Source: Magallana gigas
Taxonomy: Eukaryota
Reading direction: 5' to 3'
Assembly (NCBI RefSeq): GCF_963853765.1
Contig: NC_088855.1
Location: 41,912,001-41,976,000, forward strand
DNA length: 64,000 nucleotides
Part shown: in pieces, positions 27,284 to 36,287 of the stretch
Layout: each line of letters begins with the position of its first letter
Numbering within the stretch: position 1 is the first letter of the stretch
Made by a program: the position numbers and the translations under genes
Notes under the pieces: model-generated
Database searches by the model: none
Seen by the model: the letters and a program-made list of their open reading frames with translations, nothing else
Told to the model about the DNA's origin: nothing

Positions 27284-30200
27284 TTATATATTTTTTGAAA
27301 TTCTTGTTTTTCTTGATTCATGCTTTGATTTACATTTCCTTTCGAAACAAAGTTTTAATTCCACATTTCCGCCGTGACATCGTGTGACGTCGTGACATTT
27401 TCGCGAGCGTGATGCTTCCCCAAGACCACAACTTCTATTACATGGGCTCCATTTTGACCAATGTCCATAACCTGTAAAGAAAAAATGATTATCAGGGCAT
27501 AATTCTTAAAAAAAATAATTATTAACATCTTAATTGATTTTTCATAATGAAAAAATTAGTTTTACCGCCATTTGGATTAAAATCCTCTTCTTCAAATGCA
27601 ATATCTTCGCGCTTTTGACGATCATTTATCTTCGAAGGGACATCCATCATGGTCTTGTATATCCTCGACTTGTCCAAGTAAAGAAGCTGACGAAATTTTG
27701 TGAATATATGAAATTTTCAGTAAGCATATTATAAACAAAAATGCACTGGCTAAAAAATCGCAATGGTTTTCCTATTAAAAAGGACTATGTGCAGTATTAT
27801 TCATTTTTTGCCCCCAAATTAATGTTTTATAAAAAGTTTTAAAAATAAGGCGGAAGATAGTTGAAGTCATATTGAAAATAAGTTTGTAAAAGGTTATCAC
27901 CACAGTGACGTCATTATGTAGAAATGACGTCATGAAGATTGTCTTATTTTGATAAATTGATGTTTTGTAGCAAAATATGGGTGTTTTCCGATAATTTTTT
28001 GACTGGGAAACATCGAGCGCAGGCTTGCTCAAGTACCATTTTTTAGTATAATGTGTATAACTATCTGAAGAAAAACATATGTTAAAATCTTGCTTGAGCA
28101 GACCTGCGCTCTATACTTCCGAATGCAAAATGTAAAGAAAAAATGAGTATATTTTCATTTGTTTGCAAAATTGCGGGAATTTGGTCATTTAGGTGATGTC
28201 ATAGATAAACACGAATGAGCAGTGCTGACTAAAATCAAGATTAAAGTGATAGGCATCCTCTGTACAATGATTTATGAAGATATGATTTTTATATGATACA
28301 ATTTAAAAATTGATTGAAATTGGGGGCAGATATTTGATCATACCAATTATAGTCCTTTAAAGTGAAATATCATCTAATATACGTAAACGACAAATGTTAT
28401 ATATAAGGAATAAGGAATCATTCTTTGAGTATTATGATGTGATAATTTTGGTCGGGGCGTGATCAAATCCAATAAAGCCCAAAGGGCTTTATGATAGATT
28501 TGATCATGCCCCGACCGAAATTATCACCTCATAATATTTAAAGAATGATTCCTTAATTATTATTACTTATATTTATATAATTTTAAGCCATCGTACGATT
28601 AAATATTTAAATATAAATAAGCAAACCCCGCTGGCGCCTCAATTTGGCGTCATTTGTATTACTGAAATAAACTGAACTGTATTATGGGTTATGTAGTATA
28701 AAATCGATACGTAGTGTTATCACAGGCAAAGACACTGGATAATGTAAATATACATACATATATATATTTACATAATTGTTCTATGATGTGATTTACTATA
28801 AAAGCCCATTTCGTAGCGAAACAAATATTTCGCGAATGAATGCATAACTTTCATGATATGACGCTAAACTGTATAACTTTTGCACTTAGTTAGTATACAA
28901 TAGGGGATTACAATTTATCAAACACATAGAACAATTTCCAATATTCTATGATATTAACTAAATTTGACAATAAAAAACACATAATTCAAAAGGTCATTGG
29001 TTCAATTTACGCAACATTTCCCCCTTTATGACAGAAATATGATAAAGGTATAGATCTATCATTCAACCGTTGTTTTTTAACGTGTTTTCCCTACTAAAAT
29101 TTATTAAACATTCTTAATAATGGGATAGAGATTTTTTCAACCATATCAGCGTTCGTCTTCTCAATTTCTTGCATGAAGGTAGAATATATAATTTTAAAAT
29201 GAGTGCCAATCATTTTGTTTTAACGAATTTCCCATCTGTAAGTGTATATATTAATTGTTTGAACACAATTGTCAGCGTAAAAGGTGTTCAAGTTCTTAAT
29301 TTTATCACTTTATAAATAATTGATTGTTGCTCAATATTATTATTAACATAATTTTTCATTTATTAAAAAAAGAGAAAGGCTTATCATTTTTAGAATTGAG
29401 AGCTCGGTGTATACCCAAATCAATTTTTGAATCAAAACACTTGTCATACAGTCCATCTAACTTCAATCTAATCAGAATTAGACCTGTAAAACTGCTCCTC
29501 TGCTATAAGCTATGCATAAGTCATGATAAGTGTATCGTAGTGAAGCAGTTTTACAAGTCTAACTTTAATCAGATTGATCTAACTTATTATTCTCTTTTGA
29601 GAAGTTGACAGGCATAGCCTGGATATATGCTAAGCCTGTCCAATTCAATTCAATTTATTATCTTTGAGCTTTACAACTCATCGGAATACAAATTATAATA
29701 CATATAAAATTATCTACAAATGTGCGATGTGCAGTAAGTGAGTGGAATATTAAGACAATATAATCATGTACATATCTTAAATGTATGATAAGTAGCTTAA
29801 ACTGTAGTATTATTACATTGCTGCGCTCTCATTTTGAAAGCGCTAGACAAATATTTACCTAAATTATTGAGTTCCTTTGTATTGTTAACACTTAAAAATT
29901 TAACTAGCTTAAAAACACTTGTTGTTATTTTTGTAATAAAAACTCTTTATATATTTCTTTCGTAATTCAGCGTAAAAAGGACTCATGAGTATAAAGTGGA
30001 ACTCATCTTCTAAATCTTTTTTCATTACAATGATTGCAAAATCTTTCATTTCTTGGCACCTTGTTGTGTCGACCTTTTCCAATATATAAAGAGTGTGATG
30101 AAGTTCGAAAAATACTTTTCTTAGCTGACAGTTCCTTGGGAGGAGAGAATGGAAGATGCATATGAGCGGAAAATGGGAAAATATCAGGAGCTTGTGGCAG

Positions 30201-36200: not shown

Positions 36201-36287
36201 CTGGATCCTCTCCTGCGCTGGCAAATATTTATTAATGGCGGAAGAATACTACAACTAGACAATATAGTGCATAAATATATTTACCAT
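27284..36287 (-). CDS. Small secreted thrombospondin type-1 repeat (TSP1) precursor, 4 coding exons, 128 aa
   Basis: Exons 36287-36285 (ATG directly followed by GTAAAT, in-frame TGA two codons upstream), 35124-35050, 27686-27566, 27471-27284. Protein MFRWRTTLLYIALLVNGVVVAYSQNDLLYLDKSRIYKTMMDVPSKINDRQKREDIAFEEEDFNPNGGYGHWSKWSPCNRSCGLGEASRSRKCHDVTRCHGGNVELKLCFERKCKSKHESRKTRISKNI*. Signal peptide, RQKR furin site, WxxWxxC and six-Cys TSP1. Strong polypyrimidine acceptors at 35125 and 27472. Not present in the ORF track. Confidence 0.8.
27781..28356. mobile_element. Kolobok-like MITE copy 3
   Basis: AGGACTATGTGCAG ... ATAGTCCT|TTAA; TTAA after the right end, TTAAAA before the left end. Confidence 0.75.
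28411..28750. repeat. Hairpin-headed dispersed repeat (145-bp imperfect palindrome plus tail)
   Basis: TAAGGAATCATTCTTTGAGTATTATGA...TCATAATATTTAAAGAATGATTCCTTA (28411-28555) around a central AAAGCCCAAAGGGCTTT. The tail CAAAATCGAT...TATCACAG.CAAAG.CA.TGGA.AATGTAAATAT is shared with 53381-53620. Confidence 0.7.
29640..30122 (-). mobile_element. 3' part of a decayed RTEX/CR1-like LINE (host of the HERO-like insertion)
   Basis: Frameshifted minus-strand translation GRHNKVPRNERFCNHCNEK-DLEDEFHFILMSPFYAELRKKYIKSFYY...KLVKFLSVNNTKELNNLGKYL; tail AATAAATTGAATTGAATTG at about 29640-29660. Confidence 0.75.
30123..34298 (+). mobile_element. Decayed HERO-like (R2 group, restriction-like endonuclease) non-LTR retrotransposon bounded by 428-bp direct repeats
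   Basis: Disrupted ORF 30729-34157: N-terminal CSCGKTLKNARGLKIHMAKMGC zinc finger; RT motifs SAPGPNG, FRTISLLNVEGK, WLDLANAYGS, GCTIS, RAFMDD, KCLGK; knuckle LCGKPANLEHILSSC; RLE RPDIVIW..TVELTVP..E..ERKMGKY. At least 8 stops or frameshifts (e.g. 31200, 31488, about 31850, about 32060, 32339, 33264, 33408, 33501, 34029). 30123-30550 duplicates 33871-34298. Confidence 0.9.
34299..34920 (-). mobile_element. 5' part of the same decayed RTEX/CR1-like LINE
   Basis: Minus-strand NVSKTKVVIFRNGGKISDLESWSYNEQKLEVVNTFKYLGMLFNFNG, then frameshifted ...WGFHKAPNI..VHLNFC.RILGV....NLVYCELGRLP...FKYWLK; colinear upstream of the 29640-30122 piece. Confidence 0.75.
35280..35466. mobile_element. Short G/C-run MITE (CAGTGGCGTCGGAA...TTCCGACGCCTATG)
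   Basis: Inverted GGCGTCGGAA / TTCCGACGCC termini with poly-G and poly-C runs. A related fragment lies at about 49605-49730. Confidence 0.6.

Follow-up and report, generated by a model that had tools for sequence, protein, structure and literature searches.

A spliced oyster gene encoding a small, putatively secreted protein with a single thrombospondin type 1 repeat

The 64,000-nucleotide (nt) stretch of the oyster Magallana gigas analysed here (NC_088855.1, 41,912,001–41,976,000; the window, whose own numbering is used below) carries on its minus strand a single-copy, four-exon gene that encodes a precursor of 134 amino acids (aa) with one thrombospondin type 1 (TSP1) repeat. The gene is spliced and expressed, and it is defined by its transcript structure, open reading frame (ORF), domain and fold, orthologues, synteny and selection pattern. 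Its product is predicted to enter the secretory pathway, and it is probable that the full interpretation holds, namely a secreted precursor that a proprotein convertase would process into a single-TSP1 protein with a binding function. The domain itself is ordinary; what is unusual is that one repeat, once the predicted cleavage has taken place, would be the whole mature protein.

Gene structure and transcripts

Thirteen public Logan transcript contigs (L001–L013) were fetched and aligned to the window, and 11 of them (L002–L007 and L009–L013) join all four exons, in aligned blocks at 36256/36209..36143, 35124/5–35050, 27686–27564 and 27472 onward. These 11 contigs come from the accession series SRR271906xx, ERR10659xxx, SRR167096xx, SRR148031xx and SRR206486xx, while L008 (SRR5830801) has only exons 3–4 in common with them. 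The borders of exons 2–4, as read from the sequence, are GT/AG throughout and join in frame. Three exons given in a preliminary description of this DNA, which had been made from its letters (35124–35050, 27686–27566 and 27471–27284), are exact to the base, and the junctions 35050→27686 and 27566→27471 are both present in the contigs, the latter also in RNA run X4. Spliced transcripts, whose absence had been named in advance as grounds for dropping the gene, occur in many runs. The features of the locus are as follows.

36143..36256 or further, minus strand: exon 1 (first coding exon), 5′ untranslated region (UTR) and the seven codons MIHESKM, from contig alignments
36163–36161 and 36145–36143, minus strand: the two ATGs of exon 1, followed by the donor GT at 36142–36141, from the ORF translation
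35050..35124, minus strand: exon 2, hydrophobic core of the predicted signal peptide and predicted cleavage AYS/QND
27566..27686, minus strand: exon 3, poorly conserved putative propeptide, RQKR (27620–27609), acidic EDIAFEEEDF, NPNG(G)
27332..27471, minus strand: exon 4, TSP1 module Y74–C119 with YGHWSKWSPC, the O-fucosylation consensus CNRSCGLG, SRSRKC and six Cys
27284..27331, minus strand: exon 4, Lys/Arg-rich tail K120–I134, net charge +5, stop codon at 27286–27284
25773..27283, minus strand: 3′ UTR of at least 1.5 kb, from L004–L007, which align down to 25773–25815
36175..36192, minus strand: upstream ORF of five codons, ATG TGG AAA CCT GAT TGA, in the 5′ UTR
35653..35743, minus strand: alternative non-coding first exon with donor GTGAGT at 35652, in contig L001 only (1 of 13)
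36285..36287, minus strand: ATG-only exon of the preliminary description, unused and not conserved
27333, minus strand: pseudo-donor T/GTAAAT within the last Cys codon, used only by the old ab initio model K1QJF6

The 134-aa ORF is intact in all 11 contigs, with a length of 133 aa in L003, which has a 3-nt deletion within the predicted signal peptide. The 90-aa products reported for most contigs start at an internal Met chosen by the gene caller. A protein search matches a Logan cluster of 10 members (P0001 and P0003–P0011), of which P0009 and P0010 begin MIHESKMF, together with the UniProt entry K1QJF6_MAGGI. No close paralogue was found in the genome, where all other matches are generic TSP1 sequences at no more than 50% identity. 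The 3′ UTR reaches at least 25773, giving a messenger RNA of about 2 kb, and the contigs hold an insertion of about 55 nt relative to the window near 26285–26290.

Sequencing runs give a second view of the 3′ half of the gene. Oyster-labelled public RNA runs contain 0.58–0.86 of the sampled words of 27250–27700, which is about what exons 3 and 4 without their intron would yield. Four RNA runs were aligned to 25501–31500. The contigs of run X4 cover 26285–27472; one of them skips exactly the 94-nt intron 27472–27565 (CT..AC on the plus strand, hence GT..AG on the minus strand), and the contiguous pieces 27271–27472, 27140–27300 and 26427–27169 continue across the donor at 27333 and past the stop codon. 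Exons 1 and 2 are supported by assembled contigs rather than raw reads, exons 2 and 3 lying 7.4 kb apart.

Orthologues and selection

The search for orthologues proposed in the preliminary description was fruitful, returning relatives of 105–121 aa in Crassostrea virginica (120 aa, P0161), Saccostrea echinata (121 aa) and S. cucullata (105 aa). They share 44–54% full-length identity and retain the hydrophobic N-terminus, the R-x-K-R motif, the acidic stretch and the single TSP1. The position of the NPNGG/Y phase-1 intron is identical in all four species, the C. virginica gene structure being read from a C. virginica-like metagenome contig in place of P0161's own genomic locus. P0161 and the two Saccostrea proteins P0164 and P0165 are true orthologues, with the same architecture, intron positions and gene neighbours as the M. 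gigas gene.

The motif at the putative cleavage site reads RQKR, RKKR, RQKR and RLKR, with R55, K57 and R58 invariant. The five-sequence alignment also holds F63-E-E, D67-F, P70-N-G-G-Y-G, W77-S, W80-S, all six Cys, R94, R96 and D100-V-T-R-C-H without change, and the orthologue consensus can be written FEE(E/D)DF(N/D)PNGGYG, WSxWS and CxxSCxxG. The long basic tail is confined to the species of the window: C. virginica has NVKTK at this position, and the Saccostrea proteins end RKCRS.

Selection was estimated by the Nei–Gojobori method on exons 3–4 of the four species. The ratio of non-synonymous to synonymous substitution rates (dN/dS) is 0.07–0.18 in the part after R-x-K-R, for pairs with estimable dS, and 0.36–1.1 in the putative propeptide, with dS near or beyond saturation between genera. 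This shift is the signature of a translated gene in which the product after RxKR matters and the pro-region does not, a pattern to be expected of a processed precursor. Within the species, the contigs differ at 3 synonymous and 7 non-synonymous sites, too sparse for a selection test.

These data bear on the possibility that the locus yields an untranslated or non-functional RNA, such as a decaying gene relic with a fortuitous ORF. In favour of such a relic are the upstream ORF in the 5′ UTR, an isoform without an in-frame start and repeat-filled introns, and the literature search gave no proteomic evidence for the protein. Against it, the ORF is intact in every sampled haplotype and in four species, the low dN/dS just given goes with saturated dS, and six Cys and both conserved Trp do not vary across orthologues; a relic is very unlikely.

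Domain and fold

Pfam confirms the TSP1 module proposed earlier: TSP_1 (PF00090) matches exon 4 at E 2.3e-8 and 34.5 bits against a cut-off of 21.6 bits, and the same family is found in P0009 (31.9 bits) and P0161 (38.2 bits). The sequence also has every other element of the preliminary description, namely RQKR, the acidic EDIAFEEEDF, WSKWSPC, six Cys and the Lys/Arg tail. Five segments can be distinguished in the precursor. Residues 1–29 comprise a basic n-region, a hydrophobic core (LYIALLVNGVVV) and AYS/Q, with a top Kyte–Doolittle (KD) hydropathy over 12 residues of 2.44 at residues 15–26. Residues 30–58 form the poorly conserved putative propeptide, which ends in R-Q-K-R and has a net charge of +3. 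They are followed by the acidic decapeptide EDIAFEEEDF (residues 59–68, net charge −6), the TSP1 module (69–119, +5) and the basic tail (120–134, +5).

The module has the cysteine spacing of TSP1 group 1 (C83, C87, C98, C104, C114, C119), and the ladder residues W77 and W80 lie opposite R94 and R96. Across 49 aligned TSP1 segments W77, C83, C87, R94, C98 and C114 are invariant, and W80, R96 and C104 are nearly so. Set against thrombospondin-1, NGG-Y-G-H-W-S-K-W corresponds to the usual linker and Trp ladder; the acidic decapeptide is the sole true addition to the module.

An AlphaFold run on the predicted mature part, with the 49-row TSP1 alignment, gives a core with a predicted local distance difference test (pLDDT) score of 78–94, three strands at 16–19, 31–40 and 51–57, and floppy ends. 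A model of the whole precursor built on the five-sequence alignment was discarded at a mean pLDDT of 43. Foldseek returns TSP1 repeats only, with a probability of 1.00 for the top matches; 3r6b, 5foe and 1lsl rank first, these being thrombospondin-1 TSR2-3 and POFUT2-bound TSR1. Searches of the Swiss-Prot and cluster structure libraries had the same TSP1-only outcome. Further structural matches include semaphorin-5A TSR3-4 with sucrose octasulfate, BAI1 TSR3 with the Nogo receptor, properdin and TRAP, and by sequence the closest solved relative is thrombospondin-1 TSR1-3 (E 2.7e-18).

Gene boundaries and misleading names

The gene lies between two unrelated neighbours. A TMEM132-family gene on the plus strand (~36500–40750) stands head-to-head with it and diverges from it, the two start codons being only some 400 bp apart, and exons of a CDP-alcohol phosphatidyltransferase (PF01066) gene, also on the plus strand (~23300–24010), converge on its 3′ end. 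In S. echinata (L030) the 121-aa orthologue likewise lies between a divergent TMEM132 and a convergent CDP-alcohol phosphatidyltransferase, and in S. cucullata a CDP-alcohol phosphatidyltransferase gene likewise follows the orthologue. Two upstream blocks, at ~36480–36400 and 36262–36220, are strongly conserved between the two genera; the second contains a 27-nt perfect match with S. echinata that includes CTTCCGCCATTAATAAATATTT. These blocks are probably the promoter region shared with the divergent TMEM132 gene.

Because the same unrelated genes bound the locus in S. echinata, it is not part of a larger ADAMTSL/papilin gene, in line with the single-TSP1 gene proposed at the outset. The idea that the four exons belong, as its 5′ end or as a fragment, to a larger multi-TSP1 gene (ADAMTSL, papilin or semaphorin-5 type) draws on the UniProt model K1QJF6, which splices from 27333 to an exon at 13012–12935, and on database names of the orthologues. 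The donor at 27333 had been singled out beforehand as a place where an extension would overturn the single-repeat view; none of the 13 contigs uses it, and all read past it to the stop codon and the 3′ UTR. The CDP-alcohol phosphatidyltransferase gene also sits between 27333 and the distant K1QJF6 exon, TMEM132 lies directly upstream, as in Saccostrea, and exon 4 is the sole TSP1-like motif within the window. Pfam matched no protease, spacer or Sema domain in P0009 or P0161, which have TSP_1-type matches only, and it gave no match to the Sema and PSI domains and transmembrane segment of Semaphorin-5. For the transcripts sampled a larger gene is already refuted, and overall it is extremely unlikely.

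K1QJF6_MAGGI, a 101-aa entry named 'Semaphorin-5A', comes from the same locus and is 94–96% identical over exons 3–4. It starts at an internal Met, so that it has no signal peptide, and it has no Sema domain; its last exon (13012–12935, minus strand; 26 aa, 96% identical) lies 14 kb past the real stop and beyond the neighbouring gene. K1QJF6 is a misprediction. The names 'ADAMTS adt-2-like' for the C. virginica protein (P0161) and 'thrombospondin-1-like' for the Saccostrea proteins (P0164, P0165) are also misleading, since these sequences carry neither a protease nor a further domain. Prior knowledge of the family consists of automated predictions of the orthologues under misleading names. The expectation that ORF-based annotation would miss the gene was partly borne out: NCBI pipelines did call the orthologues, whereas the only model met for M. 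gigas, K1QJF6, is wrong. A literature search found no paper on the orthologues, K1QJF6, the run accessions or single-TSP1 oyster proteins. For oyster genomics, a wrong UniProt model is corrected and three misleading family names are exposed.

Predicted processing and function

The proposed pathway begins with a signal peptide (residues 1–29, cut after AYS) that would direct the precursor co-translationally into the endoplasmic reticulum (ER). In M. gigas, C. virginica and S. echinata this region combines a basic n-region with at least 12 residues of hydrophobic core (KD 2.4–3.2) and with small residues at −3/−1 (AYS/Q, or VHS/Q in C. virginica). Within the ER the single TSP1 would fold with three disulfides and would probably acquire C-mannose on W77 and W80 and O-fucose on S86. 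POFUT2 recognizes the consensus C-x-x-S/T-C-x-x-G, which CNRSCGLG fits, and WSKW and WSPC fit C-mannosylation motifs; all three sites are conserved in the orthologues. The genome encodes proprotein-convertase P domains, DPY19 and O-FucT.

A furin-type proprotein convertase would then cut after R55-Q-K-R58, and the fast-evolving 29-aa propeptide would be discarded. The released mature protein of about 76 aa (8.7 kDa, isoelectric point ~8.9) would consist of the acidic decapeptide, the basic TSP1 and the basic tail peculiar to the species. It is also conceivable that the protein is secreted and stays uncleaved; RxKR would then belong to a basic glycosaminoglycan-binding patch, and the active form would be the one of about 105 aa that remains once the signal peptide has been removed. 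Cleavage is itself a prediction, the propeptide is net basic (+3), and the P1′/P2′ residues are acidic (E-D, D-S or E-S), which furin tolerates although they are not optimal. Retention of the propeptide would leave unexplained why R-x-K-R is invariant in all orthologues while every other pro-region residue varies freely, and why selective constraint changes exactly at this motif; convertase genes also exist in the genome. An uncleaved active form is thus regarded as unlikely, and release of the mature protein after R58 is the preferred reading.

Binding of sulfated glycans or of a matrix or cell-surface partner through the positively charged Trp–Arg ladder is the most likely function, since solved TSP1 repeats, among them the further structural matches named above, bind sulfated ligands or receptors via this face. 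By this analogy the protein would be a small diffusible adhesion or recognition factor and not an enzyme. A more specific suggestion is that it represents an oyster-family 'mini-thrombospondin' of about 7–9 kDa, released by a convertase and acting as a diffusible ligand (opsonin, cytokine-like or matrix-signalling), with the invariant acidic decapeptide (xxxxFEE(E/D)DF) as a functional determinant. The decapeptide would then, for example, serve as an intrinsic mask of the basic Trp–Arg face or provide a second binding site for it. This suggestion is speculative and has a small chance of being right; if true, it would provide a minimal natural system for the isolated TSP1 repeat.

Several observations weigh against a secreted, processed and functional protein. 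The signal peptide is a prediction from hydropathy and the −3/−1 rule. AlphaFold models the acidic and tail segments at a pLDDT of 53–63. The upstream ORF and the alternative first exon that has no ATG could lower translation. Contigs from runs X1 and X2 are unspliced and of low depth; they resemble DNA or pre-mRNA background. The raw polyA reads of X21 are confined to 26300–27300, in the 3′ UTR, and their first mates lie on the minus strand, a pattern that fits a 3′-biased library and leaves the strand of the transcript unsettled.

TSP1 repeats have nearly always been studied within large multidomain proteins. A conserved single-copy gene with one repeat and a 10-residue acidic lead is a natural minimal system, usable for studying the binding partners of a repeat on its own and the effects of C-mannosylation and O-fucosylation on its folding and secretion. 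The gene leaves current understanding as it is and extends a well-known domain family only modestly.

Relation to other TSP1 proteins

The closest structural parallels are the TSR1-3 repeats of thrombospondin-1 (7yyk, 3r6b, 1lsl). They share with the oyster module the group-1 set of six Cys, the CxxSCxxG POFUT2 site and a (W/Y)xxWxxW ladder that follows a GG linker and faces RxRxC, and the folds agree with a root-mean-square deviation of about 2.3 Å over 54 columns. Thrombospondin-1, however, is a trimeric matrix protein of 1170 aa in which these repeats make up three of many domains, whereas one repeat would be the whole mature oyster protein. The oyster module also differs in its first ladder position, Tyr74 in place of Trp, and in the conserved acidic decapeptide that precedes it. 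The orthologues P0161, P0164 and P0165 differ from the M. gigas protein in lacking the long basic tail.

Short proteins with one TSP1 exist elsewhere: vertebrate THSD8 (~115 aa) and arthropod hypothetical proteins of about 141 aa resemble the oyster protein with language-model feature scores of 0.89–0.93. This likeness in language-model features is a lead only. THSD8 is essentially uncharacterized, turning up in passing in four papers and as the topic of none, and the arthropod proteins are no better characterized. An exhaustive representative search with exon 4 was dominated by giant multi-TSP1 proteins; the gene's own cluster alone stood out, and the search is uninformative on small relatives outside oysters.

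R-spondin likewise has one TSP1 followed by a Lys/Arg-rich tail, which binds heparan-sulfate proteoglycans. The likeness is an analogy only: no furin-like Cys-rich domain of R-spondin type was found by Pfam, the basic tail is not conserved among the oyster orthologues, and only 10 acidic residues would precede the TSP1 of the mature oyster protein, where R-spondin has two furin-like Cys-rich domains.

First exon and 5′ end

The first coding exon ends ...TCAAAG ATG/gtttgt at 36143, and an upstream in-frame ATG at 36163 yields MIHESKM-FRWR.... An exon contributing an ATG at its very end had been foreseen in kind; its predicted position, 36285–36287 with a GTAAAT donor, is 142 bases off, this ATG, and with it the junction 36285→35124, occurs in none of the 13 contigs, and the site is not conserved in S. 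echinata. The 128-aa product proposed from that exon nevertheless has the right sequence, being identical to residues 7–134 of the real 134-aa ORF, because the last codon of exon 1 happens to be ATG too. The C. virginica protein begins at the position of M7, and the annotated first coding exon of S. echinata again has an ATG directly before GTAGGT; both support a first exon ending at 36143.

The 5′ region varies among contigs. The upstream ORF is polymorphic, its ATG being replaced by AAG in L012, and the alternative first exon of L001 provides no in-frame ATG and leaves a 90-aa ORF without signal peptide. Some contigs have their 5′ end between 36233 and 36209; others run on at 36254 into sequence resembling a miniature inverted-repeat transposable element (MITE), which is absent from the window (L004, L010, L011 and L013). 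Upstream of 36254, L004 and L010 carry the terminal inverted repeat of this MITE-like element, a 29-mer of which has at least 93 genome copies, mostly in inverted pairs about 657 bp apart; in L011 and L013 the sequence comes from the interior of that element and ends ...TTTTGCAG. These sequences point to a polymorphic MITE-like insertion in the 5′ UTR or promoter, the last ~70 nt of which can be spliced out. Distant 5′ exons joined at 36254 in these four contigs were considered and rejected, the sequences belonging to one MITE-like repeat.

Two further upstream candidates were set aside. An ORF of 367 aa on the L002 transcript was rejected since the first 1438 nt of that contig map to a different chromosome (C6) and to a repeat, which makes it a chimera of the assembly. 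L008 was treated as chimeric too, because multicopy sequence from other chromosomes fills its 5′ 256 nt. The L002 segment (1–1438; C6, 53811007–53814107) is itself a five-exon transcript, and no Pfam match was found for the 367-aa protein that it encodes.

Introns and repeats

Transposons between the exons, as the preliminary description had it, are plausible from two features of the 7.4-kb intron. A degenerate RVT_1 ORF (32400–33266, plus strand, opposite to the gene; a weak match at E 3e-5, below cut-off) lies within a decayed retroelement at 30123–34298, and the stretches 27700–28900 and 29500–29700 reach word depths in the thousands in RNA contigs, which marks them as high-copy repeats. 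The same intron is shorter than 2 kb in Saccostrea. The assembly gaps (N) of the window, at 9545–9702 and 55312–55458, both lie outside the gene region. The first intron contains, at 35290–35470 (minus strand as read), a G run of ~24, a C run of ~13 and a C run of ~24 separated by short spacers, which together form an inverted homopolymer arrangement.

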